Shown: positions 954 through 64,000, counted from the stretch's first letter. The stretch is 64,000 nucleotides of DNA from Neoconidiobolus thromboides FSU 785 (GCA_025603075.1 MU626291.1:80078-144077); one strand, 5' to 3'. The notes: a model not told the origin generated them from the sequence alone. Numbers and translations are program-made.

Positions 954-1052
954 ATGAGGATGTTTTTGGCTTCATTACTTTTTCCATTTTTAAGCGCTAT
1001 TTAAGTGGGAAACTTGTTAGTAAAATTCTTAAATACAAAAATATATCCTTCA
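954..1052 (+). mobile_element. ~105-bp TIR element (MITE-like family A), copy 1
   Basis: atgaggatgtttttggcttcattac...taagcgctatttaag...cttaaatacaaaaatatatcc. Confidence 0.8.
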
Positions 1053-2019
1053 CTTTATGCTTTTGATACCAAATTTAAATTCTCAAGGTTACATCTTGCA
1101 CATAATTTTTAATTTTTAATCATGAATTCTCAACTGTTCAATTTACAGTGAAAACTATCAAATAAGATAAAGGGAGCACAAAGGTTATTGAGCAAAACGA
1201 TGACGGTAAACAATAAAGCACTTAAAAAGATAATGGCAGCAAACCGAATTTTGACCAGAATAATAGTAATTTTGCAAATAACTAAAATATTGACACCAAT
1301 AAAAGTATTTAGCATAATAAATACAGAAAGCAAACCATTAATAAGCATCAAAACTATGTCAAGGTCAACAATGAACTAAAAAAATTATTACTACTGATAA
1401 ATGTCAAGGGATGTCGATAAAAGAGACACTAAATCAATTATTTATTGAGTACGGTAATGCAAAGACAGTAATCGAAAAAGAAAGTGAAGTTATAAAATAA
1501 GAATAATAATGGAAAAAAAGTGGAAGAAAAAAGTCCAATGACGCTATTATACGTTAGCAGTACTTAGAGAAGTCAAGAAAGTTTATACAGAGAATCTAGC
1601 ACTAAGTTGCAGCAGATACATAGTGAGCACTACCGAAGAGGTTGTATTAAAGTGATTTCGGATTCAATTCTTAGAGTGTTGAAGTCACTGGATATAATGT
1701 TTAAAAGAAATAAAATAAAAATAGGTATGAGGTTGGGATCAAAAACGAAAAGTATAGTAATGTAGTTATAACAGGAATTAAAGAAATTTGAAAGTTTTTT
1801 AGAAATAATAATAGTTATGCTTTAAAGCAAATATAGATACAAATAATACTAAATATGTAACTGGACATTAATCCATCTTTAGCCACTATACCTATGAAAA
1901 AGCAATGAATATTACCCCTTTAAATAAAAACAAGTGGTAAATAATCTATTTAACTTTAGTTTTAGGTTTAAAAGTTTATTTAAAATATTTAACTTAACTT
2001 TAGAACAAAATGATAAAAT

Positions 2020-3430
2020 TTAAAGCTTAGGAGGAGCCAAACTCAATAAATCTGCTTTACGCTCAGCTTTTCTGAGGTCAGCAGACGCAGCAATAGCCTG
2101 TTCTTCTGGTGAAACTGGGACTAATGGCTGCAATTTATTTAGCTGATGGTTTGAGCCATGCTGCATTGTAACAAAGGTAAAGAAACCATCATTAGTGAAT
2201 TCTTCAACAGAACTACCAGGCTCCAGCTTTGTAACCATTACATAAACCTCCATACTTTTATTGAATACTTTGGTCACTAGACTACGTAAAATGATAATAT
2301 CACCAACCCGACTTGGTTTCACAAATTGAATCGCATCGGAGCTAATATTTTTTTAAGTGTTTTTTTAATTGGAAATTAATTTATCTGGGCTTACCTCGCT
2401 GACATTACAACCCCTTTTGCATGCCTTGTGGCCGATACTGAAGCGCAAGATTCCATCCAGTTCATAATTTGACCACCAAATAAAGTATCTATATTGTTTG
2501 CTTGGGAAGGCAAGATAGTATGTGCAGACTCTGCGTAAGTAGAGCTCGCCTTTGCAGTTGAGGACTAAACAAAAACATAAATCAATATGTAAATAAAGTA
2601 AAAGCTAGTCACTTACTAATAAATAAGATCTAAAATTTTCTAATTCTTGGGAATATTTGGCAGTTTTTCTAAGTTGCATTCTTTTATTACGCCTCACTTC
2701 TGCCTGCTCATAAAGCTGTGTTTGAAACGAAGTCTCTGGATATAGCTTTGGTAATCGTAATACGTTGTTTTCATCCCTTGGCCCATTGACCAATACAAAA
2801 GTTAATAATGAAGAGCAGCCTATGTACTTATTAATTAAATTATTTTAAAAGTTAAATTGAAGTTACAAAACCTTGGACCTAAGCCATTGAGGTCATCCAC
2901 TTCTACAGTTACTTGAACTTCAATTGAAGTTTTCCAGCTTCTATTTATTTGGCCTTTAAATATGATAATGGAACCAACCTTTATTGGGGACATGAAATGG
3001 ACTGCGTCCATACTACGTGTTGGCTAATTGAAATAGAAGGATTAAGATTGAATTTAATTTAATCAAATACTTGAGTTTACACAAATTATAGCACCTCCCA
3101 GTTTACGAATAGCATGAGTGGCCACCAAATCGATACTAGATAATATGGAACCTCCTTTTATATAGCCATTGATGGAATCAAACCCTGAGTTGGCCATATT
3201 CATTGAAGTTACTCTTAATTTCAAGTTAAATGTTAGTATACTTAAATTATAATAGCAAATTACTGAGTGGAAGTGATACTCTTTGGTTCAAAATACTTTT
3301 GAATTAAGCTTAAGCTCATGGTATTATTAAGTATCTCTTGATTTCTTTGTGTAGACATGGTGACACGATTTAATAGAGTTGGTCGTAAAAGCGATTTTAT
3401 TGATTTAATAAAGGGTTTTATACGTTGCAT
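2020..3430 (-). CDS. Double HotDog-fold acyl-CoA thioesterase (YciA/ACOT7-like), multi-exon
   Basis: Spliced by eye from ATG 3430 (MQRIKPF). Two HotDog repeats: NGYIKGGSILSSID...SMDAVHFMSPIKVG...INRSWKTSIEVQV and TLFGGQIMNWMESCA...DAIQFVKPSRVGDII...VFNKSMEVYV. GT-AG introns. Confidence 0.85.
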
Positions 3431-3920
3431 TAATATTATTAAAAATTCTAATTTTAGTTGGTCTTTTCGGTATCTTTTTCCTTTTCGTATCAACTTAATT
3501 TTTTACGTGTTTATTATTTGCGGATTTCAATTATAATAAGTGTAAAATAGTAGAGACACATTCGACTTCTAATTAGTACATTTTATTAAAAAATAAGGAT
3601 TACCAATTAAGTTTATAAATAGTATGAATTTAAATATTTAATTGGCTATCACTATTTTTACAATTATGAGAATTCTAGCGATTGAAAAAATTAAAGTGCC
3701 CATTATTTAGTACTTAGCTATGTTAAGTGTATATTCTATTTATCAAAGAATAATTCAAGAAGCTATAAGCGTTGATTATTAATTAATATATTTTCAGTAA
3801 ACTATTAATATCGCTATAGTAATAATGCCGTATTTCTTGATATTTTAAAGTATTAGTATATCAACCATTACTAAATGTAGCAAAAAAAACTAAAAACTGA
3901 ATTTATACTTTGAATTTGTT

Positions 3921-4018
3921 TATAGGGAGTATTTTTTGGTTTCATTATTTTCTATTTTTTTAAACGCTATTTGAGTGAAAAAACTGTTGATGAAACTCTT
4001 ATAAAATACATTCCCAAT
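3921..4018 (+). mobile_element. MITE-like family A, copy 2
   Basis: tatagggagtattttttggtttcatt...cgctatttgagtg...aatacattcccaata. Confidence 0.75.
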
Positions 4019-4297
4019 AACTATTCAAAGTATAAATTCAAAATTTTACTCAATTAGTTACTTTGACTTACACTTTGGCAAAAGTTGCGAAAAATACACC
4101 AGTTAAAGTGAACTAGACCAAGTATTATAAATTTATATAAAAATAAATTCTTTGATGCCATATGTTAGTTTAGATTTAAAAAATATTGGATTTTGTTCCC
4201 TTTTTATAAATAGAACATCAATTTAGTCGTAACTAAGTTTAATAAAAAAGATAGCCAATATTTCTTTTTAAAATTATAGTAGAAACAAAAAACATAT

Positions 4298-8556: not shown

Positions 8557-9429
8557 TTTAGTATTATTTTTTTTTGAAAAAAATGGTAGGCTATTTAATT
8601 TGACTTATTTTGTTAGTTTTATGTTTGGAATATTTATTATGGGAAGTCTCAAGTTTAATCCCTTTTTTTGAATTATGCAATTATTAGCAAATTTTAAACT
8701 GCGGAAAGAGGAAATTATCCTGCGTTATTTGGATTGTTTAAGTTAATTTTGTTAGTAAAAGTTGGTCTAAAACAAGTTTTTTTTTAAAAATTCTGCTTAC
8801 ACATTTTTTAGTTTTAAATTTTATAAAAAGTGGACAACTTATTTAAATAAAAAAGGGAATTCTTTTGTGTTAAAATGAATATTTAAGAGTGTAGTTCTAT
8901 TTTTTCTGAGTTTAAAAAATAATTGTAGTAAAAATTCAATTTTTATCAGAATTAAACAATAAAATCTAAAGCCGTTAAAGAGCTATTTGTGCCTATAGCT
9001 TTTTGATTTCAAAATAAGTATAACAACATTACCATATTAACTCTACTATTAGATATTTACATATGTTTCTTCCTTTTTGAGCAAAGATGGTGGCAAGCAT
9101 CTTATTGGCTATAATAGAAATTCGATTCTATAAGGATATTTAACAGAAATCTAATTTTTAATAATTTTAGCTAATATTTAAAATATTCTATTTAATAAAA
9201 ACAGCAATTTAATATTAATTTAATTTTAGTTTGATTTTAGTTTGATTTTAGCTTGATTTCAATTTTATATTAGTAATAGTAAAATACTATTTATTATAAA
9301 AAAAGATTTAAAGCAAAAACAAATTCTTATTTTATCTTTTTGACTAAATATCAAACTTTAGATCAAAAATTAATTTTACTTTGATTCTGCAAGTCTTCAT
9401 AATCAAGATTTGCCCAAAAAAAGGAAGAA

Positions 9430-9552
9430 ATGAGGATGTTTTCTTTGGCTTCATTGCTTTTTCTATCTTTTAAGCGCTATTTTAGTAAAAAATTGTTAGT
9501 AAAATCCTTAAATATAAAAATACATCCTCAAATATACAAAAATACATCCTCA
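9430..9552 (+). mobile_element. MITE-like family A, copy 3, with a tandemly duplicated right end
   Basis: atgaggatg...tacatcctca, then the 3' end (aaaaatacatcctca) is repeated at 9531-9552. Confidence 0.8.
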
Positions 9553-10128
9553 AATATATAAAAATACCTAATATTTAAATTAAAATATAAACTTAATTTT
9601 TATATCAAACTTCAAAGTATCTATTTTTACATCAAACTATAAACTTGACTTCATATTTAATTTAACTAAATTTTCTATGATTCAATACCACATTAAATAA
9701 AAACTTATTTTTAACTTTTATAATGTCTAATAATAAATCAATAAAAATATAGTTAAAAATAGTCTAATTTCAATAAAAAAAATCTATTACTAATAATATA
9801 TATTGATAATTCGCATCTACCAATACTCGGAATATATAATAAATCAACTACCAGCTTAACAGCTCGAATAAAACCTCAGGGTAAGTACAGCCACAATTGA
9901 TAAAAGCCAATGAAAGAAAGTAATTAACGAATCAGATGGTTAGGAAAACAAATCAAAATGAAAAAAGTCGCCAAATTAAGAGGGGAAAGAAGAATAAAAT
10001 TGATAAAAATTATGATGGAATTTCAAAATAAATAAAATAAAAAATTTATCCATTTTTATAATTAAAGTTTTTCAGTTTTTGTTACCCTTTTAAAATTGTG
10101 TTATTTAAGAGTTTAAATAAAAATAAAA

Positions 10129-12593: not shown

Positions 12594-12701
12594 TATATGG
12601 GGATGTTTTTTTTGGCTTCATTGTTTTTTTAATCTTTTGAGCACTATTTAAGTGAAAAATTTGTTAATAAAATTCTTAAATACATACATACATCCCAATA
12701 T
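12594..12701 (+). mobile_element. MITE-like family A, copy 4
   Basis: tatatggggatg...catcccaatat. Confidence 0.82.
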
Positions 12702-19424: not shown

Positions 19425-20709
19425 TTTTATTATTATACAATATAGCTTTAATTTTTACAAAAGAGATAAAATTCAATAAATTCTTATTTAATATATTTTA
19501 TAACTGGAATTTTTAATAATCAAATTAAGCCACCATCTTAAATCCTTACAAATCTAGTCAACCTTGATTGGTAAATTAGGATCTTATCCAATCAAATTAA
19601 TTGGTAAAAATTTTAATAGATTAAGTTATTTTGCTCTTCTCCTCGTGGTGATTTCAAAAGTGGTGAGATACTAAGTTTTACAATGAAAAGATGGCGACTG
19701 GGGAAGATTATTATGAAAATTTTATGACAAAAATAATTAAGCTCGACCTTTTATATCTTCTAGTTTATGTGGATAGCCTTTATTTATTTAATCTACTACT
19801 TTATTCATTAACACTTCCAAAAACACTATTTTGAAGACTTTAATAGATTCTAATTACAACTTCAATAGTTACTCCTATTGGTAGATTTTAAGGCCATTAC
19901 CATTTTTGGTGTCTTTTTTGATGAATTAGTATAATCTTTAATTTATTAATAGAGATTATTAAATTTTCAAAGTTAAATATTTTTAATATGAATTAATATT
20001 ATGCTAATATAATAAAAACAGTTACGAATCATATATATAACCTATAGTTAGTTAAATTATAATTCTATTAATAGGGATGAATCTAAAAAAGACAATGTTT
20101 TTGATTTCAGTACTGAATTATAATTTTTTGGAATTTTGAGCGACTCAAAAAATGAGCAAAATGTTGATATTTGAAATAGTAGAGCACCTATTTTTTGCTA
20201 AAATTTCATTAATGATTTATCTATCTTTTCGAATTTAAAAATAGATAAATTAGTGAAATAATAACAAACTTTGATTGCAGTTAAATGATTTTTTTGGATT
20301 TTTTAGTGTTGAATTCTACTTATGCAAAATTGAGAGTTATAATGTATTAGTTTTTAATTTTGCAAAGTAATTTTTGAACAAACTAAAAAATTCAGAATAT
20401 TAAGCTCCAGCTAACTTTTTTTATTTTTATTTTCACTTGAATAATAAAATAAATATAATATTTCACATAAATCAAATGATTTCAAAAGCCAATTTATTTT
20501 ATAAAAAATTTAATTTAGTCGAAAATTAAAAAACAAAATAAGTAAACAAATGATTTTGTATGAAAAAATATCAACTGACAAATAAAAATATTATAATAGT
20601 ATATAATGCTAATATACTATCAGCTGAAAACATGATATGATAGATGGAAATAATTTATTATTTAAAAAAAATTTGTAATAAAAAAAGTTAGATAAAATAG
20701 AATATAGAA

Positions 20710-20813
20710 TATGGAGATGTATTTCTATGTTTAAGAATTTTGCCAATAATTTTTCCGCTCAAATAGCACTTAAAAGATGGGAAAAGTGATGAAGTCAAAA
20801 AAAATACTTCCAT
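20710..20813 (-). mobile_element. MITE-like family A, copy 5
   Basis: Reverse orientation: tatggagatgtattt...ctcaaatagcacttaaaagatggg...gaagtcaaaa. Confidence 0.8.
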
Positions 20814-20895
20814 TAGTGTTTTTAATAAAACAAGTCATGTTATTTATAAAAGTTCACCTATTAAAAAAATAATTCCTTGAACTTGCTCATAATAT

Positions 20896-20997
20896 TATTG
20901 GGGGTGTTCTTTTTGGCTTCGTCACTTTTTCCATTTTTCAAGCACTATTTGAGCAGAAAGGCTATCAATAAAATTCTTAAACAAAAAACACTTCTAT
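20896..20997 (+). mobile_element. MITE-like family A, copy 6
   Basis: tattgggggtgttctttttggcttc...gcactatttgagc...aaattcttaaac. Confidence 0.78.
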
Positions 20998-22020
20998 TGA
21001 TAATAGTTCAAATTTAAAGTTTAAAAAGCAAAAAAAAATAGGCAAAAGTAACCGACTTTATTTACTTTTTATGGAAAGTGGGTTAATTTGAGTAAGTGTT
21101 TTCAATATACTTTTTTTATTATAAAGTTGTACTTTATAATAAACTAAACTTACAATATGACAATAATGTAAAAACTGATTTTTGTATGTTGAATTTGATT
21201 TTGGTTTTGGTTTTGATCTTAAACAAAATCACTAGTATTAAAATCCGATATTTAAAAAAAACAAATGACCATTAAAACATACAAGGCAGTAACATGCTTT
21301 TGATACTTTGATTACTCGCGTTTTCTAGCTATACAAAAAAACTTATTTATTAATTTCAACTTAACGCCTCATTTTATACAAAAATAGAAATTTCCATTTC
21401 ACTAAGCTTTTTAAAAAAATAAACTCAAACCTTGAGATTAAATTTAGAGAATTAGCAATAAATTATAAAAAAATAATCCAAATAGAAAAAGCAAACTTTT
21501 ATTGAATATTAAAAATTTCGTTTAAATGCTTCTTTCACAATTTGTTTCTCATATACGCCACTTCAATAGCACTTGGTTCCGCTATTCTTTACTCTATTAT
21601 CTCTCTTGCAGCTACGAAAAAGTCAATTATACAGGGTTCAACAAACTGAAGATAAATCATTTGATCTGACAATTGCTAATCTATTCTGCTTCTGATGAAA
21701 AGCTGTTCATTAATTAGCCAATAGAATGAGTTGAAGAATCAAATCACCTATTATAATTGGCAAGTTTCTTGTATACCTATGCTATTTTCAATCAGAATAG
21801 GCAAGAGCATAAAAAATTCAATATCATCTGATGCGGAATCACAGCAAACTGACGAAATTCAGAAATTTAATGAGCGCATGATCTAGCTATTCTTTAATTA
21901 AAAAGTTGGAACAAGAAATATAAAAGAAGAGTTGCAGACGATTGACTTTTAAAAAGTAGATCAACTTATCTTTTTTATTATTTTTTTTTTAAAAGCTTTT
22001 TTATAGCTTAACTAATTTTC

Positions 22021-24171: not shown

Positions 24172-24271
24172 TATATGGGGATGTTTTTTTTGGCCTCATT
24201 GCTTTTTCTATCTTTTAAGTGCTATTTGAGTAGAAAAATTGTTAGCAAAATACAAAAATACATCCCCATAT
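24172..24271 (+). mobile_element. MITE-like family A, copy 7
   Basis: Perfect termini atatggggatgt...acatccccatat; short internal deletion. Confidence 0.88.
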
Positions 24272-26022: not shown

Positions 26023-26640
26023 GATTCAGTTTTTTATAATAATAAAAGGCATTCTATGCTTTTTATTTGATATTTATATAATGTTGTATGCTTTGTTTTG
26101 ATCATTTTAAAATCGTTGATCTTATTTTTATTTTTTTGTAAATCTAATTTTACAATGGTTTATTTTAATTTGATGATTACGAAATTTAAATTTAGTTTGA
26201 ATTAAAATTAATTTGAAACAGTAAGATTATTAATAACTTCAGCATTTTATTTTTAATCACATTCCTATATAAATTCTAGATCTTAATATAATGATTATAT
26301 AGTAATTATATAATAATTTTACAACTGATTCATCAATAGGCCTCTTATTTTCATTCCATAGCTTACATTATAAGTTATTATATTCCAACTGTTTATTTTT
26401 ATATATATGTACTATATTTATTTATACTGATTTAAGTTGTCACCGTTTGATAAAAAAAGATCAAGCCTTTTTATAGCAAAGTTTTTCTGAACCTAAAAAA
26501 TATTATGAATTATAAAATTACATAAAACAAAAATAACATTTGCATTAAGATTATGAATCTCGTTTTCAGTATTTTATAAGTGCATACACTTCTAAAAATA
26601 TTTAGTAACTAAATAACAACTTATAATTTTAATTAAATAA

Positions 26641-26746
26641 ATATGGTGAAGTTTTTTTGGCTTCATCACTTTTTACACCTTTTAAGCGATATTTGAGTGG
26701 AAAGATTATTATTAAAATTATTAAATATAAAAATACATCCCCATAT
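26641..26746 (+). mobile_element. MITE-like family A, copy 8
   Basis: atatggtgaag...ggcttcatcac...tacatccccatata; about 50 bp downstream of the ADH stop. Confidence 0.82.
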
Positions 26747-27853: not shown

Positions 27854-28522
27854 TTTTATTTAAAAATTTTGTTGTTTTTCCTCTCTTTATTTATACTTTT
27901 TGACTACTGTTGCATTTAGGTTTATTAACTCCCAATTAGTAATTGCGATGATATGTTAAATTATTCAAGAAGCTTCACTGTTCTATTTGTTTCGGTATTA
28001 CTTTAAGCATCCTTTTATTTCGGTCCTTCATTTCTCCTGTTTTTATGCGTTTATTTTTAATTTTCGAAATTTGATTGTTTAGTGTGTCGGGATTTTATTA
28101 AATTGTGTAGAATAAAAAGATATTATAATTTGATTTCATTACTGTATTTATTAATGAATGATTAATAATTTTTCTTCTATTAACAAAATTAAGTTACTAT
28201 AATAGTAATAGTTGAAGCCTGTAGCATTTAGCTTTATTATAGTTTTATTTATAGTAAAGTAGTACTTTTATTGTTAATTTATCAAATCATTATTGAGATT
28301 TTTGAATTATTTAAATTCAGTTATTTATTTAATCGGATAAAATCGAATGTAGTAATTAATGGCAAGGCTGATTGATGAACATAGTAAAGTATCCTCATAG
28401 GAAACATTAAGGATCTTCTATATAGTTATTTTTTTTATATCTTCATTAAGTATCATTTTCAATTATTTTCTAGTTGATACAAGATACTTATTAAAATTGT
28501 GTTTTTGAAGTTGATATAGCAA

Positions 28523-28626
28523 TATAAGAAGATTTTTTGGTTTCATTACTTTTCCCATCTTTTAAGCGCTATTTGAGCGAAAAGGTTGTTAGTAAAACCC
28601 CAAAATAAAAAATACATCCTCATATA
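28523..28626 (+). mobile_element. MITE-like family A, copy 9
   Basis: ttggtttcattacttttcccatcttttaagcgctatttgagcg...tacatcctcatata. Confidence 0.82.
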
Positions 28627-30131: not shown

Positions 30132-30239
30132 TATATGTGAATATTTTTTTGGCTTCATCACTCCTTCCATCTTTTAAGTGCTATTTAAGCGAAAAAATTA
30201 CTAGTAAAGTTATTAAATACAAAAATGCATCCTCATATA
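30132..30239 (+). mobile_element. MITE-like family A, copy 10
   Basis: tatatgtgaatat...ggcttcatcac...gcatcctcatata. Confidence 0.82.
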
Positions 30240-33985: not shown

Positions 33986-34825
33986 AGGAATTCAAAATAT
34001 AAAAATTAACTTTAATATAGGAATAATACAAAATATAAAGTAAGCGTTTTATAATTCCATTCTTTTCAATTTACAAAGTAATCAAGTAGTATTTTTACAG
34101 TTTATTGATCAACTTTACTAAAATGCTAATGATAGAGAGCATCCTTGTCTTCAATTATATAAGTTATGAAAAAAACGAAAGCTCTGAGGTATTTATAAAT
34201 ATAAACATGGACTTTTATCGATCGTTTACCTATATCTAAAAAAAAGAAAAGTAATAACTTTTATTTAAGAGAAGGTGCTTTATTTACTAATAAGAAGCCC
34301 TTATAACTTAAAATATTTAATATAAAGCATTTTGCTTATTAAAATAACATAGTTGATTAAAAATCAATGAGATTCTATTGCTGTTTTAAAGATTTTTATT
34401 GAATATTGGTTAAAAAAAGAAATAGTAGAGCCTTGGGTAAATGAAATGAAACAGAAGTTATTAAATAGGAATAAAACCAAAATTTTATATTTTATAAATT
34501 CATAGTTTATTAACAACTACTTTAATGAAGAATGGAATAGAGTGAGGAAGTATTGGATTCTATAGTAGATAATCAAAAAAACGATATATATATAACAGTA
34601 AAATAACACATAAGTTGTTTTATATTTGAGTTCCAAATTTTTATTGTAAATCGTTTTAGTTTAATTTTAAATTGATACATCAAAAAACTTAGCTACCCTT
34701 TGTTCATTTACTAAAGATAAGTAGTTTACAATAAATTGTACCACTATATGGAATAAACCCTTGGTTTTAATTCATCTGTATATAAAAACTTACAAAAAAA
34801 TAACAATCATTTTTATTCTATTAAA

Positions 34826-35890: not shown

Positions 35891-36967
35891 TCAGTACTTT
35901 TCCATAAAAAGTTCTTAATATAATACTTTTTTGGATTTCATTATTTTAATGGCTACTCAATAAATTTAATGCAAAAGAAATTTCAGATATTTTGTATATA
36001 AAATGTGAACTTATCATAAAATACCAACTTTATTAAATTTAATCAATTCAACATGTTTTTATAGATTTTTCACCACTAGCTTCAACTTTATAAAAAATAG
36101 CAAATTTTTCATTACAAATACAACTGATTTTAATACTGCTGATTTTTTTGCAAACTTTCTACTATTGCAATCTTATACCCTTATCGTTTATCAAATTATT
36201 TATTTAGAGTAAATGTTAAGTGTTAATATTGAAAGACATTGAAAACGAATTTTTCTTACAAAAGTAAAAACTTATCATTTTTTTGTAGACACTTCTTTTA
36301 TAATATTAAGTCCTGACATACTTGGTTTCCAAGCTAATAAAATTAAACCTTTGGAGTTTTGTTTTTGGTAGAATGAGAGCAAAATAAGATTTAGTTGGCT
36401 AAAAAAATTCATTTTGGGAAGCCTATTTTTAGCATTTGTTACAAATCTCTGACTCAGTATTTATTTAAAGCAGTGACAGTCAATTCATCTTAGAATCCTT
36501 GAATTCACGAGGTTAACACAAATCTAAAATGAACAGAATAACTATTCTAAAGTTCTTCACAGATGGTTATGAGTTGAATAACTTTTTAAAAATTAGACTT
36601 TAATTAACATCAAATTTAAGCTCGGGATTTAGTTGAATATTAACTCAATTCGCTAAAACTTAAAATTGCCATATTAGAAAGCTAACTAAATGAAATAGTC
36701 AGTGAGTGTCATGTAAAACTATATGAAGTGAATAAATTGGACCTGTGGATAGAGTTGGAATCTGTCATTATTTATGCCTGCTAAAGCTCGCACTTTTCTA
36801 TATCATTTAGCTATCCTTTAAGGTTGAATTTTTATTATAGTTTTAATTCATAAAGTTATTAATTTTTTCTGAAACAAGAACATTTGGTAAGTTTAAATTC
36901 TCTCACAAGTATAAAAACAAACTGTAAAATAAATAATTCTAATTTATAGTAAAATAAATAACAAAAA

Positions 36968-38563
36968 ATGTATACTATTAATTTCAGTGATAAAACGATC
37001 CAAGAGTTAAGTTTAGGGATAGTGGAAAACCGATGGAAAGCAATAGAGGTACTAAATCATTTTCAACAAAAAGCACATTTGGCAAATGAAAAAACAAATT
37101 GTATAACTGAGTTTATGGATGAATATAGTGAAAAGGCAGCTGAAGAAATTGATATCAACATACAATCTGGTAAAGAGTATGATTTAAATAAATATCCTTT
37201 ATTAGGTGTTCCAGTATCTATAAAAGATTTATTTGATGTACAAGGTTATGATACTGTTGCTGCGTATCAAATAAATATAGGAAAGAAAGCGAATGAAGAT
37301 GCAGGTATCGTGAAACTGATTAAACAATTAGGTGGTATTCCATTTTGTAAAACAACCATATGTCAATTTGCAATTACAAGTGAAAGTTCAAGTTCTTTAC
37401 ATGGGACTACATATAATGCCTATAATCCAAAGTATTCAGCAGGTGGTAGTAGTTCTGGCGAAGGTCCTTTGATTGCTCTGAAAGGGTCTCCATTAGGTAT
37501 TGGCTCCGATATAGGCGGTAGTTTAAGATATCCATCAGCATGGAATGGAATCTATACAATCAAACCCAGTTTTGATATTTTACCTAGCAATGGTAGCTTC
37601 ATTTTTGAAAGGGGACAAAGTTTTATTAAAGCGGTAACGGGACCAATGGCTAGTAATGTAACTGATTTAAAATATATATGGGAAGCTTTGTTAAGCAAAG
37701 ACTTACGAACTTTTGACCCGAATTGTATTCCGTTGGCTAAAATGGAACCATCTACTAAGAAAAAAAGATTTGGGTATTTCACTTCTTGTGATAGTTTGCC
37801 TACTACACCAGCAGTTGAAAGAGCAGTAAACGAAGCAGTACAAGCGTTGGAAAAGGGAGGCTATGAAGCGGTAAAATTTCAACCCCACTCTATGCTTGAA
37901 GTGTTTGGTTTAGCTAGTAAGATTTTTGGTGCTAACTCAAGCAAAGAAAGTTTTGAAAAAGTAACTAGTGAAGGATATCATTCAACCATTCGAAATTTAG
38001 TGTTTTTTGCTAAGCTACCAGGAATAGTGAAATCGTTCTCAGAATGGGTTCTAAAATTGTTTGGGGAAGAATTAATAAGTTATGGAGCTAGCATTCAACA
38101 TCAAAGGAAAGTAGACGAACTTTGGAAGCTGCAGCATGAAGTGGAAAGTTATTTTATAGAGTTTACAAACCATTATGAAGAATTAGATATCGAGTTTTTA
38201 ATTTCTCCAATACATGTTTTACCTTGTCATAAACATGGTGAATTTATCAACACTTGTTCTGGGGCGGCCTATTCTCTATATTTTAATATTTTAAATATAC
38301 CATCAGGCATAATACCAGTTACAAATGTAGATCCTAAAGTGGATTCTTTTGAATTGAAGGAATGGTTAAATGATAAGATCAGTAATGGCCTTAAGTTAGG
38401 TAGAAAGGGATTAACCGACTTTTATGGTTGTTATGATGCTACAGAAATGCAAGGGCTTCCAGTTGGATTGCAAATCAGTTGCAAAAGGTATGAAGATTCT
38501 AAAGTATTGGAAGCTATGAAGATTGTAGATGATACTTTAAAAGAGTTTAAAAAGATGAGTTAA
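36968..38563 (+). CDS. Amidase-signature family enzyme (FAAH/acetamidase-like), intronless
   Basis: 531 aa; Lys-Ser-Ser triad motifs GVPVSIKD, GGSSSGEG and GIGSDIGGSLRYPS; GLPVGLQI. Confidence 0.93.
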   Translation: MYTINFSDKTIQELSLGIVENRWKAIEVLNHFQQKAHLANEKTNCITEFMDEYSEKAAEEIDINIQSGKEYDLNKYPLLGVPVSIKDLFDVQGYDTVAAYQINIGKKANEDAGIVKLIKQLGGIPFCKTTICQFAITSESSSSLHGTTYNAYNPKYSAGGSSSGEGPLIALKGSPLGIGSDIGGSLRYPSAWNGIYTIKPSFDILPSNGSFIFERGQSFIKAVTGPMASNVTDLKYIWEALLSKDLRTFDPNCIPLAKMEPSTKKKRFGYFTSCDSLPTTPAVERAVNEAVQALEKGGYEAVKFQPHSMLEVFGLASKIFGANSSKESFEKVTSEGYHSTIRNLVFFAKLPGIVKSFSEWVLKLFGEELISYGASIQHQRKVDELWKLQHEVESYFIEFTNHYEELDIEFLISPIHVLPCHKHGEFINTCSGAAYSLYFNILNIPSGIIPVTNVDPKVDSFELKEWLNDKISNGLKLGRKGLTDFYGCYDATEMQGLPVGLQISCKRYEDSKVLEAMKIVDDTLKEFKKMS

Positions 38564-39223
38564 ATTTTATTGTATTGAACTATTTTTACTTATGTGTCTA
38601 TTTTTATCTAAATAAAAGCATCAAGTCACTGATTATTTGAGTTTGAAATAGAAATAGTTGTTCGTTGTTAAAAGAAGTATTATTAGTAATTATTAGATTA
38701 TTTTTTTAAGTCTATAGTAACTAAAATTTATAACATGAAAGGTACTAAAAGGTATATCAACACTTAATAATGTTATTAATATTATTTTTTATTTTAAGAA
38801 ATACATTAAACCTAATATTACTATTTATACATTTTAGTAAAATAATATTGTCAGCTTTTTACTAATCAAAAATTATATCGATTTTCAAATTATATTATAG
38901 AACAATTATAAAAAATTATATATTATCTATTCAATGTCCAAAATACAACTATTGAACAAATAAGTGAACCTGTTACTACACTCAGAGAAGGAGATACTAA
39001 TAAACATAAATACTCAAATTATCGATCTTCATTGTCAATAAGTATTATATTTTTATCAATTATAGGTTGTTTCATCAGATTAGAGATCGTATCTTACAGT
39101 AATCTCAATTGGTTTAATACCATAATAATAGAAGAAATATTAGGATTATGTAAAAAAGAATAAGAGTTGATTTCTATTTATTCCAGTTAAGTTACAAAAA
39201 ATGAGAAATATAGTAATAAAGCA

Positions 39224-39327
39224 TTTGGGAGTGTCTTTTTTGACTTCATTATTTTTTCCAATTTTTAAGTGCTATCTAAGTGGAAAATTTGCCAGTAAGA
39301 TTCTTAAATACAAAAATACATCCCCAT
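39224..39327 (+). mobile_element. MITE-like family A, copy 11
   Basis: tttgggagtgtc...gacttcatt...cttaaatacaaaaatacatccccat. Confidence 0.82.
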
Positions 39328-39517
39328 TTGGAATAATTAATAATTTAAGTTTACTAACAATTAAAATTGAGTTAAAATCAATTTTGATAGGTTCAAATCA
39401 ATTCGTTACTATATGCCTATTAAGTAAATAATTTTGTAGAAGAATAATGATAATAACTCTTTTTAAAATAGTAAATTACTCCACTCCAAAAACGTATTTG
39501 ATATCGTTGATATTCTA

Positions 39518-39620
39518 TATATGAGATGTATTTTAATCTTTAAGAATTTTACTAACAATTTTTCTATTCAAATAGCCCTTAAAAAATGAAAAAATAATGA
39601 AATAAAAAAACATCCCGATA
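39518..39620 (-). mobile_element. MITE-like family A, copy 12
   Basis: Reverse orientation: atatgagatgtatttt...ttcaaatagcccttaaaaaatg...catcccgata. Confidence 0.8.
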
Positions 39621-40091
39621 CCTTGGCTTCCCTTTTATCACTTCAAATAAATTATCCCTTCCATTTAATTTAAGTAATCTTTAATCGAATTAAATATCAT
39701 ATACTACCTTTTTTTTGACATTATTGAAAAATGTTAGTTAAAGATTTTTATTAATATATTAAATTTCATTTATTGATATTTTATTTTTTTGTTTTATTAA
39801 ATATCACACTTGATTTTCTTTACTCTAGCTCCTAATTTATGGTGCTATACCTTATCTTTATACTCTTAAAATAAAGGTAATTATTGATAGTTTTATGAAT
39901 TTTTTAATAATATTTATCTTTGTAATATTTAGACAATAGTTGTAATGTACCTTATGAAGAAATGTGTGAGTTAGAAGTGGATAAATTAACATTAGAATTG
40001 GTCATTAAGACTAGTTACAAGTTAATAGATAATAAGGCTATTTTAGTTATAATATATAATATAGTCAATAATTTTACTAGTGGTTAATAAA

Positions 40092-40197
40092 TATATGGAA
40101 ATATATATTTTTATTTAAGGATTTTATTAACAACCTTTCTACTCAAATAGTACTTAAAGAATGGAAAAATAATGAAATCAAAAAAAATCCTCATATA
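40092..40197 (-). mobile_element. MITE-like family A, copy 13
   Basis: Reverse orientation: tatatggaaatat...ctcaaatagtacttaaagaatgg...atcctcatata. Confidence 0.8.
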
Positions 40198-44853: not shown

Positions 44854-46464
44854 TTAATTTTTTGATTTAAATTCTTTTAAACATTTGTCCACAATCTGCA
44901 TCCCTTTTACTACTTTAAGATCTTGATACCTTCTACCAATAACCTGAATACCAATAGGAATATCTTTCATTTTAATAGCATCATATTGGCTATACATAGC
45001 ATGTAAGCCAAGTCTACCTAACTCAAATTGATTATTAAACTTATTACTTAACCAATCATTTAATTGAATAGTATCTTTATCTGGAATAACTTTAGTAACT
45101 GGAATACAACCAGCTGGTAAATTTAATAAATTAGCTACCATAGAATACCCTGTACCAAATACTACTTTAGAAAATTGTTCATGTTCATGAGTTGGATGAG
45201 TATGAACTGGACTTATAATAAAATCTAAACTCAATTCATTTAATTGTTGATTAAATTTATCAAACAACAAATCCGCTTGATGATGTAATTGCCATAATTG
45301 GCCAGCCGAACGATTAGTTAAAATATCAAAGGTATTACTTAATATTTTTTCACCCATTAAATTATTTAGTATAAAATATATAATAAAATGTAATAAACTT
45401 GGTAATTTTGATAAATTATTTAAAGCAGCAACTGCCTTATCAAATCCTTCATCTTGGATTTTACTAGAGGCTTCTCTATAACTATCTGATCCAAATATTT
45501 TACTAGTTGTATTAAATACTTGATCAATTGGTAATGGATCAATTTCAATAACTTCATAACCTTGATCTTTCAATGCTTTTACAGTTTCTAATACTCCTCT
45601 TTCTACTGCTGGTGTAGTTGGTAACTTACCATAACTACTATAATATCCAAACCTGACTTTTTTATCATTAATAATATCCTCATCTCCTTTACTAATTGGA
45701 ATACAACTAGGGTCTACCTTCTGTCTATTTTTCGCCATCAACAAAGTTTCTACAAGTAAACTTAAATTTTCCATACTATTTGTCATTGGTCCAGGAGTTG
45801 GTTTAACATAGCCCTGACCCGATTGAAATTTAAATGAACCTTTGGTTGGTAAATAACCGCTAGTTGGTTTAAAACAATATATACCAGTCCAAGTAGCGGG
45901 ATATCTTAAACTGCCACCAACATCGGTACCGATACCAAATACACTACCACCTAATTTAATCAAAGGTCCCTCGCCTGAACTACTACCACCAGCTGAATAC
46001 TTTTTACTAATTGGATGGAACGTTCTTCCATTTACTGGATTGGTACTCTCGGTAGTTAATGCTAATTGACACATATTTGTTTTACAAAAAGGAATGGCAC
46101 CTAAACTTTTTACTAATTCAATCATACTACCATCTTTAACTGCCTTTTTATTTAAATTACATTTTAAGCCAGCAATGCTAGGATAACCTTTGATATCTAT
46201 CATATCCTTTACAGATACTGGGATACCGAGTAATGGGTAGTCGGATTCATTGAATTCAATACCAGAAGATATCTTTTCATCGAGATCTTTAGCTAAATTT
46301 AGAGCATACTCATCTAAACGTTGAGTTATACAATTGGTTTTGGAATGGGCTTGTTGGCTTGTTTCAATGAAATAAGACAATACATCAACTGCCTTCCAAG
46401 TTCCTTGACGTACGTTGTTAGCTATTTCTTGAATAGGAGTATTTTCCAAATTGATTAAAGTCAT
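44854..46464 (-). CDS. Amidase-signature family enzyme (FAAH/acetamidase-like), third copy, intronless
   Basis: 536 aa; GIPVSVKD, GGSSSGEG, GIGTDVGGSLRYPA; colinear with 36968-38563 but well diverged. Confidence 0.93.
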   Translation of the reverse strand: MTLINLENTPIQEIANNVRQGTWKAVDVLSYFIETSQQAHSKTNCITQRLDEYALNLAKDLDEKISSGIEFNESDYPLLGIPVSVKDMIDIKGYPSIAGLKCNLNKKAVKDGSMIELVKSLGAIPFCKTNMCQLALTTESTNPVNGRTFHPISKKYSAGGSSSGEGPLIKLGGSVFGIGTDVGGSLRYPATWTGIYCFKPTSGYLPTKGSFKFQSGQGYVKPTPGPMTNSMENLSLLVETLLMAKNRQKVDPSCIPISKGDEDIINDKKVRFGYYSSYGKLPTTPAVERGVLETVKALKDQGYEVIEIDPLPIDQVFNTTSKIFGSDSYREASSKIQDEGFDKAVAALNNLSKLPSLLHFIIYFILNNLMGEKILSNTFDILTNRSAGQLWQLHHQADLLFDKFNQQLNELSLDFIISPVHTHPTHEHEQFSKVVFGTGYSMVANLLNLPAGCIPVTKVIPDKDTIQLNDWLSNKFNNQFELGRLGLHAMYSQYDAIKMKDIPIGIQVIGRRYQDLKVVKGMQIVDKCLKEFKSKN

Positions 46465-47944
46465 TTTATTTTAATTTTGAACTAAAAGTATAGAAAATAA
46501 ATTTCATTTGCATTTAATGTTAATTTTCCACCTCAATTAGTCTGTAATGTGACATTTGGAATTTTAGGATGATTTAACCTGGCTGGATAAATCTTTGAGG
46601 ACTATTGGTTGAACTTAATTTGACAGACTCTGGACTATTCTAAGGAATTTCAAAGCTATTTTTAGGTTTTCGTTTTTTTGAAATAAAATCCAGAAATATC
46701 ATATACAGCTATAACAAAGATCAAAGACTATAAATTTTAATGATAAAGTTATTCATTAAGTAATAAATCTTAACTTATCTTATCTCTAGAACCTTACTTT
46801 AATTCTATCATATTTAACATTCAATTAGTTTTTAAACTTTCCTTATCTACTTTAATGAAGCATTTGAAGGGGCTTAATTTCTTTAAAGTTTAAAAAAGTA
46901 TTAATTTTTGGTGTATTTATACTATTTGAGATGCTTATTATAATAGTTATCCATGTTATTACAAATAAGAGTAATGAGTGACTACTACTTTAGAAATGCA
47001 TTTATCAACAATTATTATTATATCAAGGTATTGAATATTGCATGATCAATTTAGTAATAAATTATCTCATAATTAAAAAACTAGAATGCATTTTTATTAG
47101 AAATGAGAAGTTTAATTGAGTTTTTAAATTTCCTGTTAGACTATGAATGTTTTAAGTTTTAATATTTAGATAGTAATTTTTAAATTTTACATTATGTAAA
47201 AAATGAGTAAAATAATAACTTAAAAAGGACTGATATAGTGATGTTTTCTTATTTAAAAATCTGGAATAACTTGAATTTCACTGAAAATATTATTATTCGA
47301 AATTTTCTAACTTGGAAATTCTGTTAGTTAAGAACCCATAAAAGTATTTAAATATACAATAAACTTCAAATTGATTTCAAGTGAATAATTTAGATCACTA
47401 TATTTTTAATAACTCGATAAGGAGGTTATAAAGAAATATGAAATAGAAAGTAAGATAGATGTCCGAAGCTAGAGCTTCTATTTGAAAGAAAATGAAATTA
47501 GTTAATCAATTAATTATTGAGATATAAAACTTCCGAAATTTTTTGAGTTATCAAAGTGCTACTTTTTTTAAAATATCAAATAAAACGTTTTTCTTAAAAG
47601 AATATAAATTATATACTTTTAAACATATAGTTTGTTTGATAAATACGTTTCAAAAGTATTAAAATTGAAAATAGTTAAATAACTATAAAATTTAGTGCTT
47701 AAGGCCTGGTTGCTTTATATTAATTATAAAAAGCTGAAAGTTAAGCAAAGTATAATAATTTCGTAAAAAAATGCTCAAAATATTAAAAAAAGCTATTTAA
47801 TAGAGTATAAAACTATACTAACAATAAAAATAATATAAATAATATAAATAAGGAAAATAACTATTTATGTTAAAACATTAATTAATATAGCTAAAAAAAA
47901 ATTAAATAAAAAAATTAAAGATGTATTAATATTCAAGATTTAAC

Positions 47945-48052
47945 TATATGGGGATGTATTTTTATATTTAAGGATTTTATTAATAATTTTTCCGCTCAAA
48001 CAGTACTTAGAGGATGGAAAAAGTAATGAAACCAAAAAAAACATCCCCATAT
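47945..48052 (-). mobile_element. MITE-like family A, copy 14
   Basis: Perfect termini tatatggggatgt...acatccccatata. Confidence 0.9.
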
Positions 48053-48062
48053 AATAAAATAT

Positions 48063-48170
48063 TATATGGGACTGTATTTTTTGTTTAAGAATTTTACTAA
48101 TAATCTTTTCTTTCAAATAGCGCTTAAAAAATGGGAAAAGTAGTGAAGTCAAAAAAAACATCCCCATATA
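48063..48170 (-). mobile_element. MITE-like family A, copy 15
   Basis: tatatgggactgt...tcaaatagcgcttaaaaaatggg...acatccccatata; 10 bp from copy 14. Confidence 0.88.
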
Positions 48171-48265
48171 AACTACAAAATTAGTTTTTATAATTTATAT
48201 CATTTTACTAAATTAGCTTTAAACTTTTTTATTCAAATTGATTTATACAAGTAGTGTTATTTTAT

Positions 48266-48366
48266 TCGAAATATTTTTGTGTTTAAAAATTTTACTAATA
48301 ATCTTTCCACTCACAAATAATATTAAAACATGGGAAGTAATGAAGTTAAAAAAAATACTCCCATAT
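48266..48366 (-). mobile_element. MITE-like family A, copy 16 (diverged)
   Basis: tttttgtgtttaaaaattttactaata...atgggaagtaatgaag...tactcccatata. Confidence 0.72.
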
Positions 48367-49587
48367 AATAGTTACAAAAATAGCAACTTTTATATTCAAA
48401 TAAATAATAAATAATAAATAATAAATAATAAATAGTATAACTTAAATAAGAATTTAATTTTTAAAATAATTCAAAATACTGTTTTATTAGCTTTATATTT
48501 AAATTAGTTACAATTTAAATAATTAATATGAAATATTTAAAAGGAATTTTAATAGCAAACTTGATTTTTAAAATTATTTTTTTAATAAAACTACTAATTT
48601 TTTTATAGTGTTTTTTATAAAGTTTATAGTTATATCTTTTGTTTTATTGGTTTTAAAAAATTATTTAATTATTTATATTGTTTTTCAATTATTTTCTAAA
48701 TGTTTTTATTTTGATATAGTGATATTTATTTTATAAAATAGCACTAGTATCTAATTTGTTGTTTTAGTTTTTCAATATAATACCTCTTTATTCTTCCTAG
48801 CTAACTTTAATCTTTAATAACTTAGCTCATTAGCACATTAAGGTATTATTTACACTGTTTATCAATTTCGATTATTTGATTATATTTATTATAATTTTAA
48901 ATTATCGTTATTTCTGTTTTAGTATTAGCAGTTTCTATAAAATATGACAAAACACTTGCTGCATAACAAATATCTGGTAGATTTTCAAAAGTCTTAACTT
49001 TGTAGGCCATTCTAAGAAATTAATCTTGGATTGACTTTCGAATCTAGTTAAATTTATTTTTAAATCTAATTATTAGTTTATTTTTATCAATCTTATTTCA
49101 TAAAATCTAAAATAAAAAGGAGAAATTCTATTACAGAGAGCTATTACTGAATTTCACCTTAGATTTCTAGTCCGCTTTAAGATAAATTTTGATAAAAGGA
49201 GCTTAACGTAATAACTGAATTGACATTTTTTCATACTATATACTTATTATAATAATATATATGTATATATAGTACAATTTAACATAAAATAATTAATATA
49301 TTAAATGTTTATCTAATTAATTATGACAAAGAATAAAAGATGCGTTTCTCCGTAAAAGTAAAAAAATGAAATTGAGTTTAGCTATTGTTCCGTCAAAATT
49401 TAGGATAACAATAAATTGAAAGACTAAAAATGGAAATTGTGGACAAACTAATTTTTAATTAAAAAATTAAATGTAATAAATATACATTTTCACTCTTTAT
49501 TTCCTATTTTTCTAATATTTTTTATTTCTTTCAATTTAATTGACTTAAACACGATCTAAATAAATACAACAAACAAAATAAAAAGAC

Positions 49588-51256: not shown

Positions 51257-51363
51257 ATATAATTGAAGGTTTCTTTTGGCTTCATTACTTTTTCCATTTT
51301 TAAGCGCTATTTAAGCCAAAAGATTGTTAGTAAAATCTTTAAACAAAAGAATACGCCCCTAAT
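51257..51363 (+). mobile_element. MITE-like family A, copy 17
   Basis: ttttggcttcattactttttccatttttaagcgctatttaag...atacgcccct. Confidence 0.8.
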
Positions 51364-51407
51364 TATAAATATTATAAATAGCTTGGAAATATGAACTAAA
51401 GCTAAGG

Positions 51408-51505
51408 TATAGGGATGTTTTTGTTTAAGAAATATATCAACTTTTTTCCTCTTGGCAGCATTCAGACAATGCAATAATAAATGAAATCAAAAAAATATCC
51501 TCATA
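51408..51505 (-). mobile_element. MITE-like family A, copy 18 (diverged)
   Basis: tatagggatgtttttgtttaag...atgaaatcaaaaaaatatcctcata. Confidence 0.65.
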
Positions 51506-51849
51506 ATATTCACAGATATAAATTAAAAACTTTGAAGCTGATGATCTAATTTAAATTAATTAGATGAAAACAACTATTATTAATAACAATATTTTTTTTA
51601 AGTTTCTAGAATTTTTCAAAAATTTCACAATTCTAAATGGAAAATTTGTAGTAGAGTTGTAGAACTGCAACAGTAAAAATATTCAACATATTGATTTATT
51701 ATTTAGATAAATTTAAAATAACAGCAAGTAAAAATTACCAATGTAACTAGTAGCTATTTTTAATGATAGAACCTATAAATGTAAAAGGAGATTATAATAA
51801 AACTTGCTCAATATGATTTTTTTTTAAATTAAAAATAAAAGCAAGAAAC

Positions 51850-51922
51850 GCCTTCTTGGCTCAGTTGGCAGAGCGTCCGCCTAGTAAGCGGAAGGTCATT
51901 GGTTCGATTCCGATAGAAGGCA
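51850..51922 (+). tRNA. tRNA-Thr (anticodon AGT), intronless
   Basis: GCCTTCT/AGAAGGC acceptor stem, GCTC/GAGC D-stem, TCCGC-CT-AGT-AA-GCGGA anticodon arm, GGTTCGATTCC T-arm; 73 nt. Confidence 0.97.
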
Positions 51923-51945: not shown

Positions 51946-52546
51946 AAATGTAATTCTCTCTATTCTAGTCAGTTGAATTTTGAACTACTTCATATCCTCA
52001 ACAATAAAATACTTAGAGCTATATTCCTTTAAGAATTTAAAACACTTAATGATGTGTGTTTTTATAATTGTAACTTTATTTTTAAGTGTTTTTTTATCGA
52101 AGATTTTTACGCTCAGTAACACCTAAAAAAATGAACAAAATTATACCTAAAATCTATTTTAAAAAATAATGTATTCACTCTAATTATTTTAATAAAGCTG
52201 AATGTAATTATTGACCAATAAGATAAGGAATATTGAGTAGACTTAGATAGTTTGATAGGAATTGACATCGCCAATTCCTCTACAAAGATCTATTAAAAGA
52301 TAAACTGGGCCATTTTGGTTTACGATTAAACATTTAAATGCTACAATTCAATTTTACTAAAATCTCATGCTCCCATAAAAAGTTCGAAGTTTAATCCTCA
52401 TTTAATTGGTTAAAAAAACGAAGAATCAAAATTATCGATAAAAAGCAAAGAGATTGATTGATCAAATTTTAACCAAATTTGAAGATAATCTAAGATTTAA
52501 ATTTTCAAAAATCAAGCTTTTTAGATTTTTATTTAAAAATTAGAAA

Positions 52547-57764: not shown

Positions 57765-57942
57765 ATGTTTTTTGTTAGCCTATTAAATTTATTATCATCT
57801 ATTTAATTCATCTCTTGATTTTCATTACTAATATAATATAATAAGTAAATGTAACAAATAAATGAATTTAAAGTTTAGGTATAGAATTCTTATTAAAATG
57901 ATTAAAAAGCAAATTAGGATAGAATACTGTTACTAAAATCAT

Positions 57943-59166: not shown

Positions 59167-59292
59167 AATATTAAAAATAAAAACTATTAAACCCTTTCCT
59201 TTCTTACCAACTATATATACCTTCAATGTAAATGCATTATTTAAAATAACGATACAAAAAAAATGCATTTTTAATTAATTTTTAATTAATTT

Positions 59293-61569: not shown

Positions 61570-62680
61570 GGCTAATAAGTTATTTTATGCTTTTTTTTTC
61601 TATATTAAAGATTAAAAATGAATTAAACAAAATCTATTTTTTAAAATCATTAAACTAAAATATTAAAATTTCATGAGGTTTATTTTATCCCTTAATTGGA
61701 TATTTAATATTGACTTAATAAAGGGTATTAGAAGATATCAAATTGTTGCTTTATTAGATTTAAAAAGCAGATAAATAAATAAATAATTATAATAGTTTAT
61801 TTTTTATAGTTTCAAAGGCCTAAGGGGAGAAGCTTTGTGTTTATTAATTTAAAAGAACAAGGATAGAGCAAAGCTTAAGAGGGAATAAAGTCAAATAAGG
61901 GGCGAGCTCTAAAGAAGTTAGTAAAGGCCTCCACTATATTGGAATTAAGATCAACCATGAAAGTGGGAATTGATACTTTGATAGTATCTTTTTCGCTGTG
62001 AGTAAGTATGCAGTGGAAAACTTGAGTTTAGTAAGAATGAGGTTTATGAATTTGGAACAGAGAATCATATATGATTTGAATTCATCTGATTTAGTGTACA
62101 TGTATCAGCCTTAAAATATTCCTAGGTTATTAAGATATTACTTCTGATACTCGAATCGAAAAGACTTTACCTTCAATCCAAAACTTCAAACTTAGAAGGA
62201 TAACTACCAATAGTAATCAACTTATCCTTCTAATCTTTACATCCTGATTGGTTAGTAAATAGTTTTCTAAAATTATCAGTCAGTATTTGATATAAGTATC
62301 TCCAAAGGTCAAATTGCTATTTATAAGTAAACTATTCTTTAGGTTGCGTCTTAACAATATATTTAATCAACTGATTAAATAGAAACAAATATGAACTTCA
62401 GAAGGCCAGTATGGATTAAAACTACCACTAGAGTAACGACAATATGGAGACTCCCTGTAGAGACATACTGAATACCAACTTTAAACTATATTTACCAATA
62501 TAATCAACCAAGTGTGAAAACTAAAACTAACCGAAAAGGCTAAACAAAAAGCTTGACTAACTTGAATAGCATCTCCAAGATTTGAATCTGAAAATAGTAA
62601 AAATATTTACATCTAATTGGCTTTACTATCATTTGCTTTGGTTGATAAAATAAGCCATTTGCAGATTTTGAAATTTACTA

Positions 62681-62782
62681 AATAGATATGCTTTTTTTGG
62701 CTTCATTATTTTTCCATTTTTTAAGTACTATTTGAGCGGAAAATTTGTTAGTAAAATTCTTAAACACGAAATACATCCCCAT
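62681..62782 (+). mobile_element. MITE-like family A, copy 19
   Basis: ttttggcttcattatttttccatt...ctatttgagcgg...atacatccccat. Confidence 0.82.
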
Positions 62783-63110
62783 CTTTTATTTTACCTAGTG
62801 CTTAAAAACTACTTTTCTATAAAAAAATTTTAAATAGTTATTAACTATGTGAAATCTGGTACTCAGTGCTTGAAGTTAATAACAGCTATTACCTGGTTGA
62901 CTACACTATAAGTCAAAAGGTCTTAATTTATGTGACTAAGGTAGCCTTGAATTATTAAGAATAGTATGTAATAGACTACAGACTATGTAAGATAAGTAGA
63001 ATAAATAATAATAATGTAAAATCTACATAAAATACTATTAAATAAACTTAGTGGCTTTATTAAACGTTCGAAATATCAGGGAATAATTCAGTTAAAAAGC
63101 CTCGAGCTAC

Positions 63111-64000
63111 TATACTCTAAAATTTCTTTTATACTTCAACAAGTATAAATATCAAAATGAGAAGATAATATTCTTTGGGATGGAGCTAGAAATTCTCATA
63201 TCAAATCAAACTAAGAACGTGGGATTGACTTTCTCTGAACTCGAGAACACAACAGCTTAAGTGATTATTATGCTATAATTAACCATGGGACTGACAGAGC
63301 GATATTTTACAACAAGTTATACCAGTAAAAGTTTTGGTAGTCCTAGAATTTCTATTAAACTTAGTGGAAATTCAACTAATTTAATACAAATTATTTATAG
63401 TATAAAACTGCGTTAAACACTTTTACTTTTAATAAAAAATAAACTTTTATGGAATTTTAAGCAAAGTCCTTAAAATACCAATTTTTTAGAAATTAGATAA
63501 AAATGAAACCAATTTAGACATCCCTATACAATAAAAAGTATTTGATAATAATGTTTAAAAATATAATTTGCTTTTTATAAAAAATAATATATAGTAAGGT
63601 TTTTTGATGTCATCACTTTTTTTATAAGTATTATTTGAGTAAAAAAGCTATTAGTAAAATCCTTAAACAAAAAAATACATCCATATATATCACACTTAAA
63701 ATGCTTTTTGTTATTATTAATAAAATAAATATAAAAATTAAAACTTAATTAAAAGAGTTTATAAATGTTTTATATCCATTTTGTAAAATTTTAATAGATA
63801 AAAAAATATTTAAATTTATACAATTTTACTGTTTTTTATTTGTCTTATTCTTTTACTTAAAACTGTGAAATATCGCTTCGTCAGTCCCATGGTTAATTAT
63901 TTTGATTTGTTATGAGAATTTCTAGCTCCATCCAAAAGAATATTATCCTCTCATTTTGATATTTATACTTTTCAGAGTATAAAAGAGTTTACAGAGTATA
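63111..64000. repeat. Long inverted repeat (foldback-type element); may extend past the window end
   Basis: 63111-63210 matches the reverse complement of 63901-64000 at 89/100 without gaps. After a 64-bp left-arm insert (63211-63274), 63275-63310 matches the reverse complement of about 63865-63900. Confidence 0.85.
63588..63688 (+). mobile_element. MITE-like family A, copy 20, nested in the 63111-64000 inverted-repeat element
   Basis: tatatagtaaggttttttgatgtcatcac...tatttgagt...ccttaaac...tacatccatata. Confidence 0.72.

Follow-up and report, generated by a model that had tools for sequence, protein, structure and literature searches.

An abundant 99-bp Sola2-group MITE family in Neoconidiobolus thromboides and its probable mobilization by a longer Sola2-like element

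The 64-kb stretch of Neoconidiobolus thromboides DNA analyzed here (the window; AT-rich eukaryotic DNA with 19-35% G+C, taken from a genome assembly of 24.6 Mb in 799 contigs) harbors a short dispersed repeat, which is a miniature inverted-repeat transposable element (MITE), i.e. a 99-bp non-autonomous cut-and-paste DNA transposon. The family is a new and abundant MITE of the Sola2 group with at least one recently active subfamily, and its copies have very probably been mobilized by the Sola2-like DDD transposase of a longer element, which is called the partner in the following. A preliminary description of the window had suggested the MITE reading, and it is borne out by the combination of small size, non-coding sequence, inverted repeats, a fixed 4-bp target duplication, empty sites and a high copy number. 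The search with an nhmmer profile, initially made from four clear copies and afterwards updated with all of them, returned exactly the 20 copies that had been counted before (E-values from 1e-12 to 1e-28, Table 1), and the consensus rebuilt from the copies agrees with the earlier one. Likewise, the terminal 13-mer with up to two mismatches occurs 20 times in the window, compared to 1.75 expected occurrences.

The boundaries and target duplications were deduced from 59 copies with both ends located. These copies came from the window and a small number of additional loci as well as from an unbiased 200-kb sample, and an alignment of 85 copies was used for the consensus, folding and decay tests. 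The element extends from GGGGATGT to ACATCCCC with a modal length of 99 bp, and these two 8-bp sequences form the perfect terminal inverted repeat of the consensus. Among the 59 copies, 42 have the same 4 bp on both sides and a further 10 show one mismatch, while duplications of 5, 6 or 8 bp were not found among them. Most of the 42 perfect duplications are ATAT (29), followed by ATTT (4) and AAAT (3), and a few others read TTAT, GTAT, TAAT, AACT or ATAC. In addition, a weak palindromic preference extends further outward, with A at position -7 in 42/59 and T at position +7 in 37/59 copies. The inverted repeat of 13 bp reported earlier actually consists of the 8-bp repeat, the 4-bp duplication and one flanking base; it was seen because the usual duplication, ATAT, is palindromic. 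Similarly, the length of 98-108 bp given earlier takes in the flanking duplication.

The preliminary description had offered two readings of the AT-rich ends. According to the first one, the repeat would be a Stowaway-like Tc1/mariner MITE of the form TATGGGG...CCCCATA with TA as duplicated target, which is compatible with the TATAT...ATATA ends of most copies. However, the non-palindromic flanks comprise 13 direct 4-bp pairs and no inverted one (AAAT/AAAT, ATTT/ATTT, TTAT/TTAT, GTAT/GTAT, AACT/AACT, ATAC/ATAC, TAAT/TAAT), and empty paralogous sites hold the target 4-mer once, with the element starting at GGGG. Both observations contradict a TA duplication and led to the rejection of Tc1/mariner; the Sola2-like DDD blocks in the predicted partner protein also speak against this assignment, the probability of which we regard as practically negligible. 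According to the second reading, AT or ATAT would surround GGGG...CCCC termini as in Tourist-like PIF/Harbinger or ISL2EU-like MITEs. Here, the ATAT boundaries agree with the duplication data, but the superfamilies do not. G-rich termini are common among Tourist elements and are likewise present in our family, however, PIF elements duplicate 3-bp TWA and ISL2EU elements 2 bp, whereas the duplication found here has neither 2 nor 3 but 4 bp, and both candidates were rejected accordingly. A duplication of 4 bp would suit a piggyBac or Kolobok derivative, but the target of these elements is TTAA, which was found in 0/42 perfect duplications, and this candidate was rejected as well. Given that the element with the common terminus apparently encodes a Sola2-like protein, an affiliation with PIF/Harbinger, ISL2EU, piggyBac or Kolobok is extremely unlikely.

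Mobility of the family is documented by empty sites, which had been proposed as a check and could be found as paralogous sites within the genome. The systematic search turned up seven copies inserted into older repeats, which occupy at least five different sites with 1-14 empty paralogues each. For example, the filled site in one partner element (L038) reads ...ATTATTA ATAT [element] ATAT ATTACTAAG..., whereas the insertion is lacking in five paralogues with ...ATTATTA ATAT ATTACTAAG... at this place. One filled site is located within a 465-bp repeat resembling a long terminal repeat (LTR), and the window copy of this repeat is empty there (63109-63227). Moreover, two partner-element sites are each filled in two partner copies (L048:1088-1185 and L038:454-556; L047:407-505 and L042:2672-2768) and empty in the other ones; either the same ATAT/AAAT site was struck twice or the filled partner copy itself was duplicated.

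The copy at 47946-48053 has relatives with 97-99% identity on four other contigs, where the flanks differ and one relative shows a TTAT duplication. Near-identical copies with different flanks indicate that at least one subfamily moved recently. The divergences of the copies from the consensus lie between 4% and 23% with a median of 12%. The copy number was estimated genome-wide, as had also been recommended. A 17-base core pattern with up to two mismatches gave 4,321 matches in the genome (2,185 forward, 2,136 reverse), compared to 99 matches for the reversed control. Since calibration on the copies known in 264 kb showed that this pattern recovers 62% of them, the genome should contain about 6,800 copies, corresponding to approximately 2.7% of its 24.6 Mb or one copy per 3.6 kb; the unbiased 200-kb sample contained 56 copies. 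The copy density of the window is typical, because the pattern density of 182 per Mb in the sequence examined equals the genome-wide value of 175 per Mb.

The search for a longer transposase element with the same ends, another suggestion of the preliminary description, led to remnants of a Sola2-like DDD transposase beside the GGGGATGT terminus. In termini outside the 99-bp family, ATAT or ATTT precedes GGGGATGTCYAAATTGGYYTCA, and at the end of the partner element the same 4-mers are followed by GGGGATGTCYAAATTGG, which includes the 8-bp terminus of the MITE. This end gave 148 first-look genomic candidates and 41 scored matches, many of them at contig ends, and the homology between partner copies extends over at least 1.6 kb. 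A six-frame comparison of partner copies gave no coding signal in the plus-strand frames near the terminus; the open reading frame (ORF) of the partner runs toward the terminus on the opposite strand. A 94-residue piece of this ORF has 136 genomic matches, most of them with stops or short frames. The minus strand of the partner copy L034:152-934 contains an open frame of 261 residues with the blocks IIVLDFKQN, WGDTENHFKSQEF and ENHGKSIVDEHFG, which can be compared to VLMDFKEN, WSDGAKHFKSAEIL and YHGKSDVDRHF in Sola2_DFa-2 and to ILCDFKEN, WCDNARHFKSNEIL and YHGKSECDQHF in Sola2_PPa-1 (PMC3627910, Additional file 3). The aspartates are spaced by 84 and 42 residues in the partner and by 87 and 43 residues in Sola2_DFa-2. 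A full HMMER search yielded 634 relatives at E <= 1e-3, and the three catalytic aspartates are invariant in an alignment of 19 diverse homologues among them. One named relative belongs to Smittium angustum, another zoopagomycete. No Pfam model matches the transposase piece and the ESM Atlas matches comprise only unnamed eukaryotic clusters, some with DUF7869. Judged by motif-level comparison, the partner is predicted to encode a DDD transposase related to the Sola2 transposases.

The relation between MITE and partner becomes visible when the MITE 5' arm is compared in register with the partner 3' end. All 8 terminal bases and 24 of the 37 further bases agree, while shuffled sequences reach a mean of 14-15 for the latter (P = 0.0002-0.0006). 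The common sequence is limited to about the first 45 bases, and none of the partner copies that were read would yield the MITE by mere internal deletion. Nevertheless, both elements have the same target in addition to the same 8-bp terminus, and together with the related subterminal sequence this suggests that the DDD transposase of the longer Sola2-like element very probably mobilizes the MITE copies in trans. The transposase would bind the ends and cut at GGGG/CCCC, and a staggered 4-bp cut would be made at ATAT. Once inserted, the copies would decay neutrally, and AT-rich target choice together with the loss of harmful insertions would keep them out of coding sequences.

Some points weigh against this assignment. 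Around the transposase piece used for the search, open frames reach 415 residues at most and the majority of partner copies contain stops, and the partner copies that were read are partial, none of them having both ends and an intact ORF. Furthermore, gapped alignments of the MITE arms with the partner ends did not score above shuffles, so that only the in-register comparison is significant. Finally, the Sola2 assignment is a motif-level comparison with two published sequences and not a tree of Sola1, Sola2 and Sola3. A further step would be to assume that the Sola2 system is still active, with an intact transposase gene among the approximately 140 remnants now mobilizing the 99-bp element. 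Present activity is conceivable, because near-identical copies exist at different sites, but we consider it a tentative and rather doubtful idea. If true, it would provide the first experimentally tractable pair of Sola2 transposase and MITE, and this in fungi from which the superfamily had been considered nearly missing.

Instead of being neutral insertions, the copies could represent functional host elements that are kept near genes as hairpin RNA, small-RNA source or cis-regulatory module, as had been considered in the preliminary description. Small RNAs derived from plant MITEs are known (cited in PMC5199201), many copies of our family are located within 100 bp of gene ends, and one copy folds as an imperfect hairpin somewhat better than shuffled sequences (z = -3.1 as DNA, -2.1 as RNA). 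However, among the 85 copies a specified hairpin has 85.6% paired cells compared to 85.8% in shuffles and a covariation of 0.126 compared to 0.129, RNAalifold found no consensus pairs, and Rfam gave no match for the MITE, the sole match in the window being a tRNA. A structured non-coding RNA was rejected, as neither compensatory pairs nor a known family were detected. The conserved core, which had been taken as a possible sign of function, follows base composition, because conservation amounts to 78% in G/C columns and 92% in A/T columns, and terminal G/C positions (0.80) are kept no better than interior ones (0.77). Changes at G/C sites are 2.8 times as frequent as at A/T sites, which agrees with a drift of the genome toward A+T, and the slower mutation of the latter sites explains the apparent core. 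The decay is strongly transition-biased, as transitions (G>A, C>T, T>C, A>G) account for 81% of the changes. The uniform decay across core and ends, which the preliminary description had named as a refuting condition, argues against a selected function. The copies decay neutrally, and their domestication as host elements appears very unlikely.

The statement that the copies are always intergenic holds true with regard to ORFs of at least 90 residues in the window, which overlap with 0/20 copies; introns and untranslated regions are beyond this test, which was done without gene models. Since 22% of the ATAT sites are situated in such ORFs, the absence of all 20 copies from them has a probability of P = 0.007 under random insertion, and therefore target choice alone does not account for the avoidance. 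The removal of harmful insertions would be a simple addition to it. The lack of any copy in the gene block at 52.5-61.6 kb was verified, and this block holds several multi-exon genes; a weak partial MITE-like match (52069-52140, E = 0.017) is located just outside of it. Elsewhere in the genome, MITE copies are located between the genes of a tandem array (L020:1151-9547), which consists of five or more diverged genes encoding small proteins rich in cysteine, with serine-rich tails and a repeated CCFGD...CNESYCKVFKG motif.

Table 1. Positions of MITE copies and of the partner fragment in the 64-kb window
Feature	Position	Strand	Remarks	Evidence
MITE copy	951..1054	+	both ends degenerate; coordinates take in 4-5 flanking bases	nhmmer E=8e-24
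MITE copy	3919..4019	+	old, diverged	nhmmer E=7e-16
MITE copy	9427..9533	+	target duplication AAAT/AAAT; 3' terminus tandemly repeated at 9544-9556	nhmmer
MITE copy	12594..12701	+	duplication ATAT/ATAT	nhmmer
MITE copy	20709..20816	-		nhmmer E=7e-27
MITE copy	20895..21001	+	divergence from consensus 20%	nhmmer
MITE copy	24172..24271	+	8-bp internal deletion; ATAT/ATAT; 85 bp past stop of S9 peptidase ORF	nhmmer
MITE copy	26640..26746	+	ATAT/ATAT; about 50 bp past stop of alcohol dehydrogenase ORF	nhmmer
MITE copy	28519..28625	+	decayed 5' end	nhmmer
MITE copy	30132..30238	+		nhmmer
MITE copy	39222..39329	+	duplication ATTT/ATTT, direct, non-palindromic	nhmmer
MITE copy	39518..39622	-		nhmmer
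MITE copy	40093..40197	-	divergence from consensus 22%	nhmmer
MITE copy	47946..48053	-	young subfamily; relatives on four other contigs	sequence comparison
MITE copy	48064..48170	-	10 bp from copy 47946..48053	nhmmer
MITE copy	48261..48367	-	decayed 3' end	nhmmer
MITE copy	51258..51364	+		nhmmer
MITE copy	51407..51507	-	most diverged copy of the window	nhmmer E=3e-12
MITE copy	62679..62784	+		nhmmer
MITE copy	63586..63688	+	decayed 5' end	nhmmer
Partner terminal fragment	63320..63526	-	read inward from GGGATGTCTAAATTGGTTTCA end	genomic matches to same stretch

Several other features were observed in the window and the additional loci. In the case of the copy at 9427-9533, a tandem repetition of its 3' terminus follows 22 bp downstream, so that TATTTGAGGATGT is found twice on the minus strand between 9522 and 9556, which represents a small local duplication of the end. 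A gene for tRNA-Thr(AGT) is situated at 51850-51922, 340 bp from the MITE pair 51258-51364 / 51407-51507. The 465-bp repeat mentioned above is a discrete dispersed sequence at 62848-63312, which starts with TGTGAAAT and ends with ATTTTACA; a second partial copy occupies 63880-64000 on the minus strand, and 760 first-look genomic candidates with 84-89% identity were found. It is probably a solo LTR, and some of its copies contain MITE insertions. Another repeat of about 111 bp, which has no relation to the 99-bp family and shows 93-100% identity between its copies, was found at L013:5376-5486, L014:836-950 and L014:6856-6966, possibly representing a second small element. An alcohol dehydrogenase encoded in the window has its closest named relatives, with 78-82% identity, in paralogues of N. 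thromboides FSU 785; Massospora and Entomophthora come next, which agrees with the assignment of the genome to this fungus. Moreover, the window contains three amidase paralogues (34823-35891, 36962-38560 and 44857-46470), of which two are complete and match Pfam Amidase with E-values of about 1e-83. The one at 34823-35891 is interrupted by an assembly gap (N run at 35043-35142). Both flanks of the gap align with a complete paralogue in the same order and orientation (34823-35042 with 36965-37185, 35143-35891 with 37751-38560), hence, about 565 bp of coding sequence should be concealed by it. The gap has no bearing on the MITE finding, because the closest copies, at 30132 and 39222, are 4-5 kb away.

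With regard to its meaning, the present analysis reveals no new mechanism and is an ordinary mobile-DNA finding, notable for the rarity of reported fungal Sola2 elements. In a survey of fungal cut-and-paste transposons, Sola2 was found in one case only, Aspergillus flavus (PMC5751038), and a comparative study that included N. thromboides reported 13.5% repeats and mentioned neither MITEs nor Sola elements (PMC11105155). The preliminary description had not recognized the repeat as a described family, and in line with this no description of the 99-bp family was found in the searchable literature; a metagenome scan for the 5' end gave no match either. With its exact boundaries and target defined, a very abundant and formerly unclassified repeat is now assigned to a known superfamily, which aids repeat masking and gene annotation. 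Furthermore, the known range of the superfamily is widened by the abundance of Sola2 copies in an entomophthoralean fungus and by the homologue in Smittium angustum.

For Sola2 DNA transposons (Bao et al. 2009), the inverted repeats are described as short and the duplicated 4-bp target as AWWT (PMC3627910), and both features recur in our family, with inverted repeats of 8-22 bp here compared to 12-22 bp published and AT-rich duplications such as ATAT, AAAT and ATTT. The predicted partner transposase has the same three DDD blocks at nearly equal spacing, whereas the terminus is GGGGATGT here, compared to GAATATTT... and GTT(T)AAATTTT at the 5' ends of the published elements. Sola2-Fanzor elements are represented by DFa-1/2/3 of Dictyostelium fasciculatum and PPa-1/4/5 of Polysphondylium pallidum (PMC3627910). 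In contrast to these, no Fanzor/TnpB gene turned up here, although no search was aimed at such genes, and the host is a zoopagomycete fungus with a non-autonomous derivative at about 6,800 copies. Sola2-type MITEs of insects have been catalogued in iMITEdb (PMC5199201); they are, like the present family, short, non-coding and classified by duplication and inverted repeats, a likeness that refers to their description only. Finally, the plant Stowaway and Tourist elements are similar in small size, high copy number, AT-rich insertion near genes and hairpin potential, and there, too, the sequence in common with the autonomous partner is mostly confined to the ends. However, these elements duplicate TA or TWA, whereas the duplication is 4-bp AWWT in N. 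thromboides, and the transposases belong to different families.

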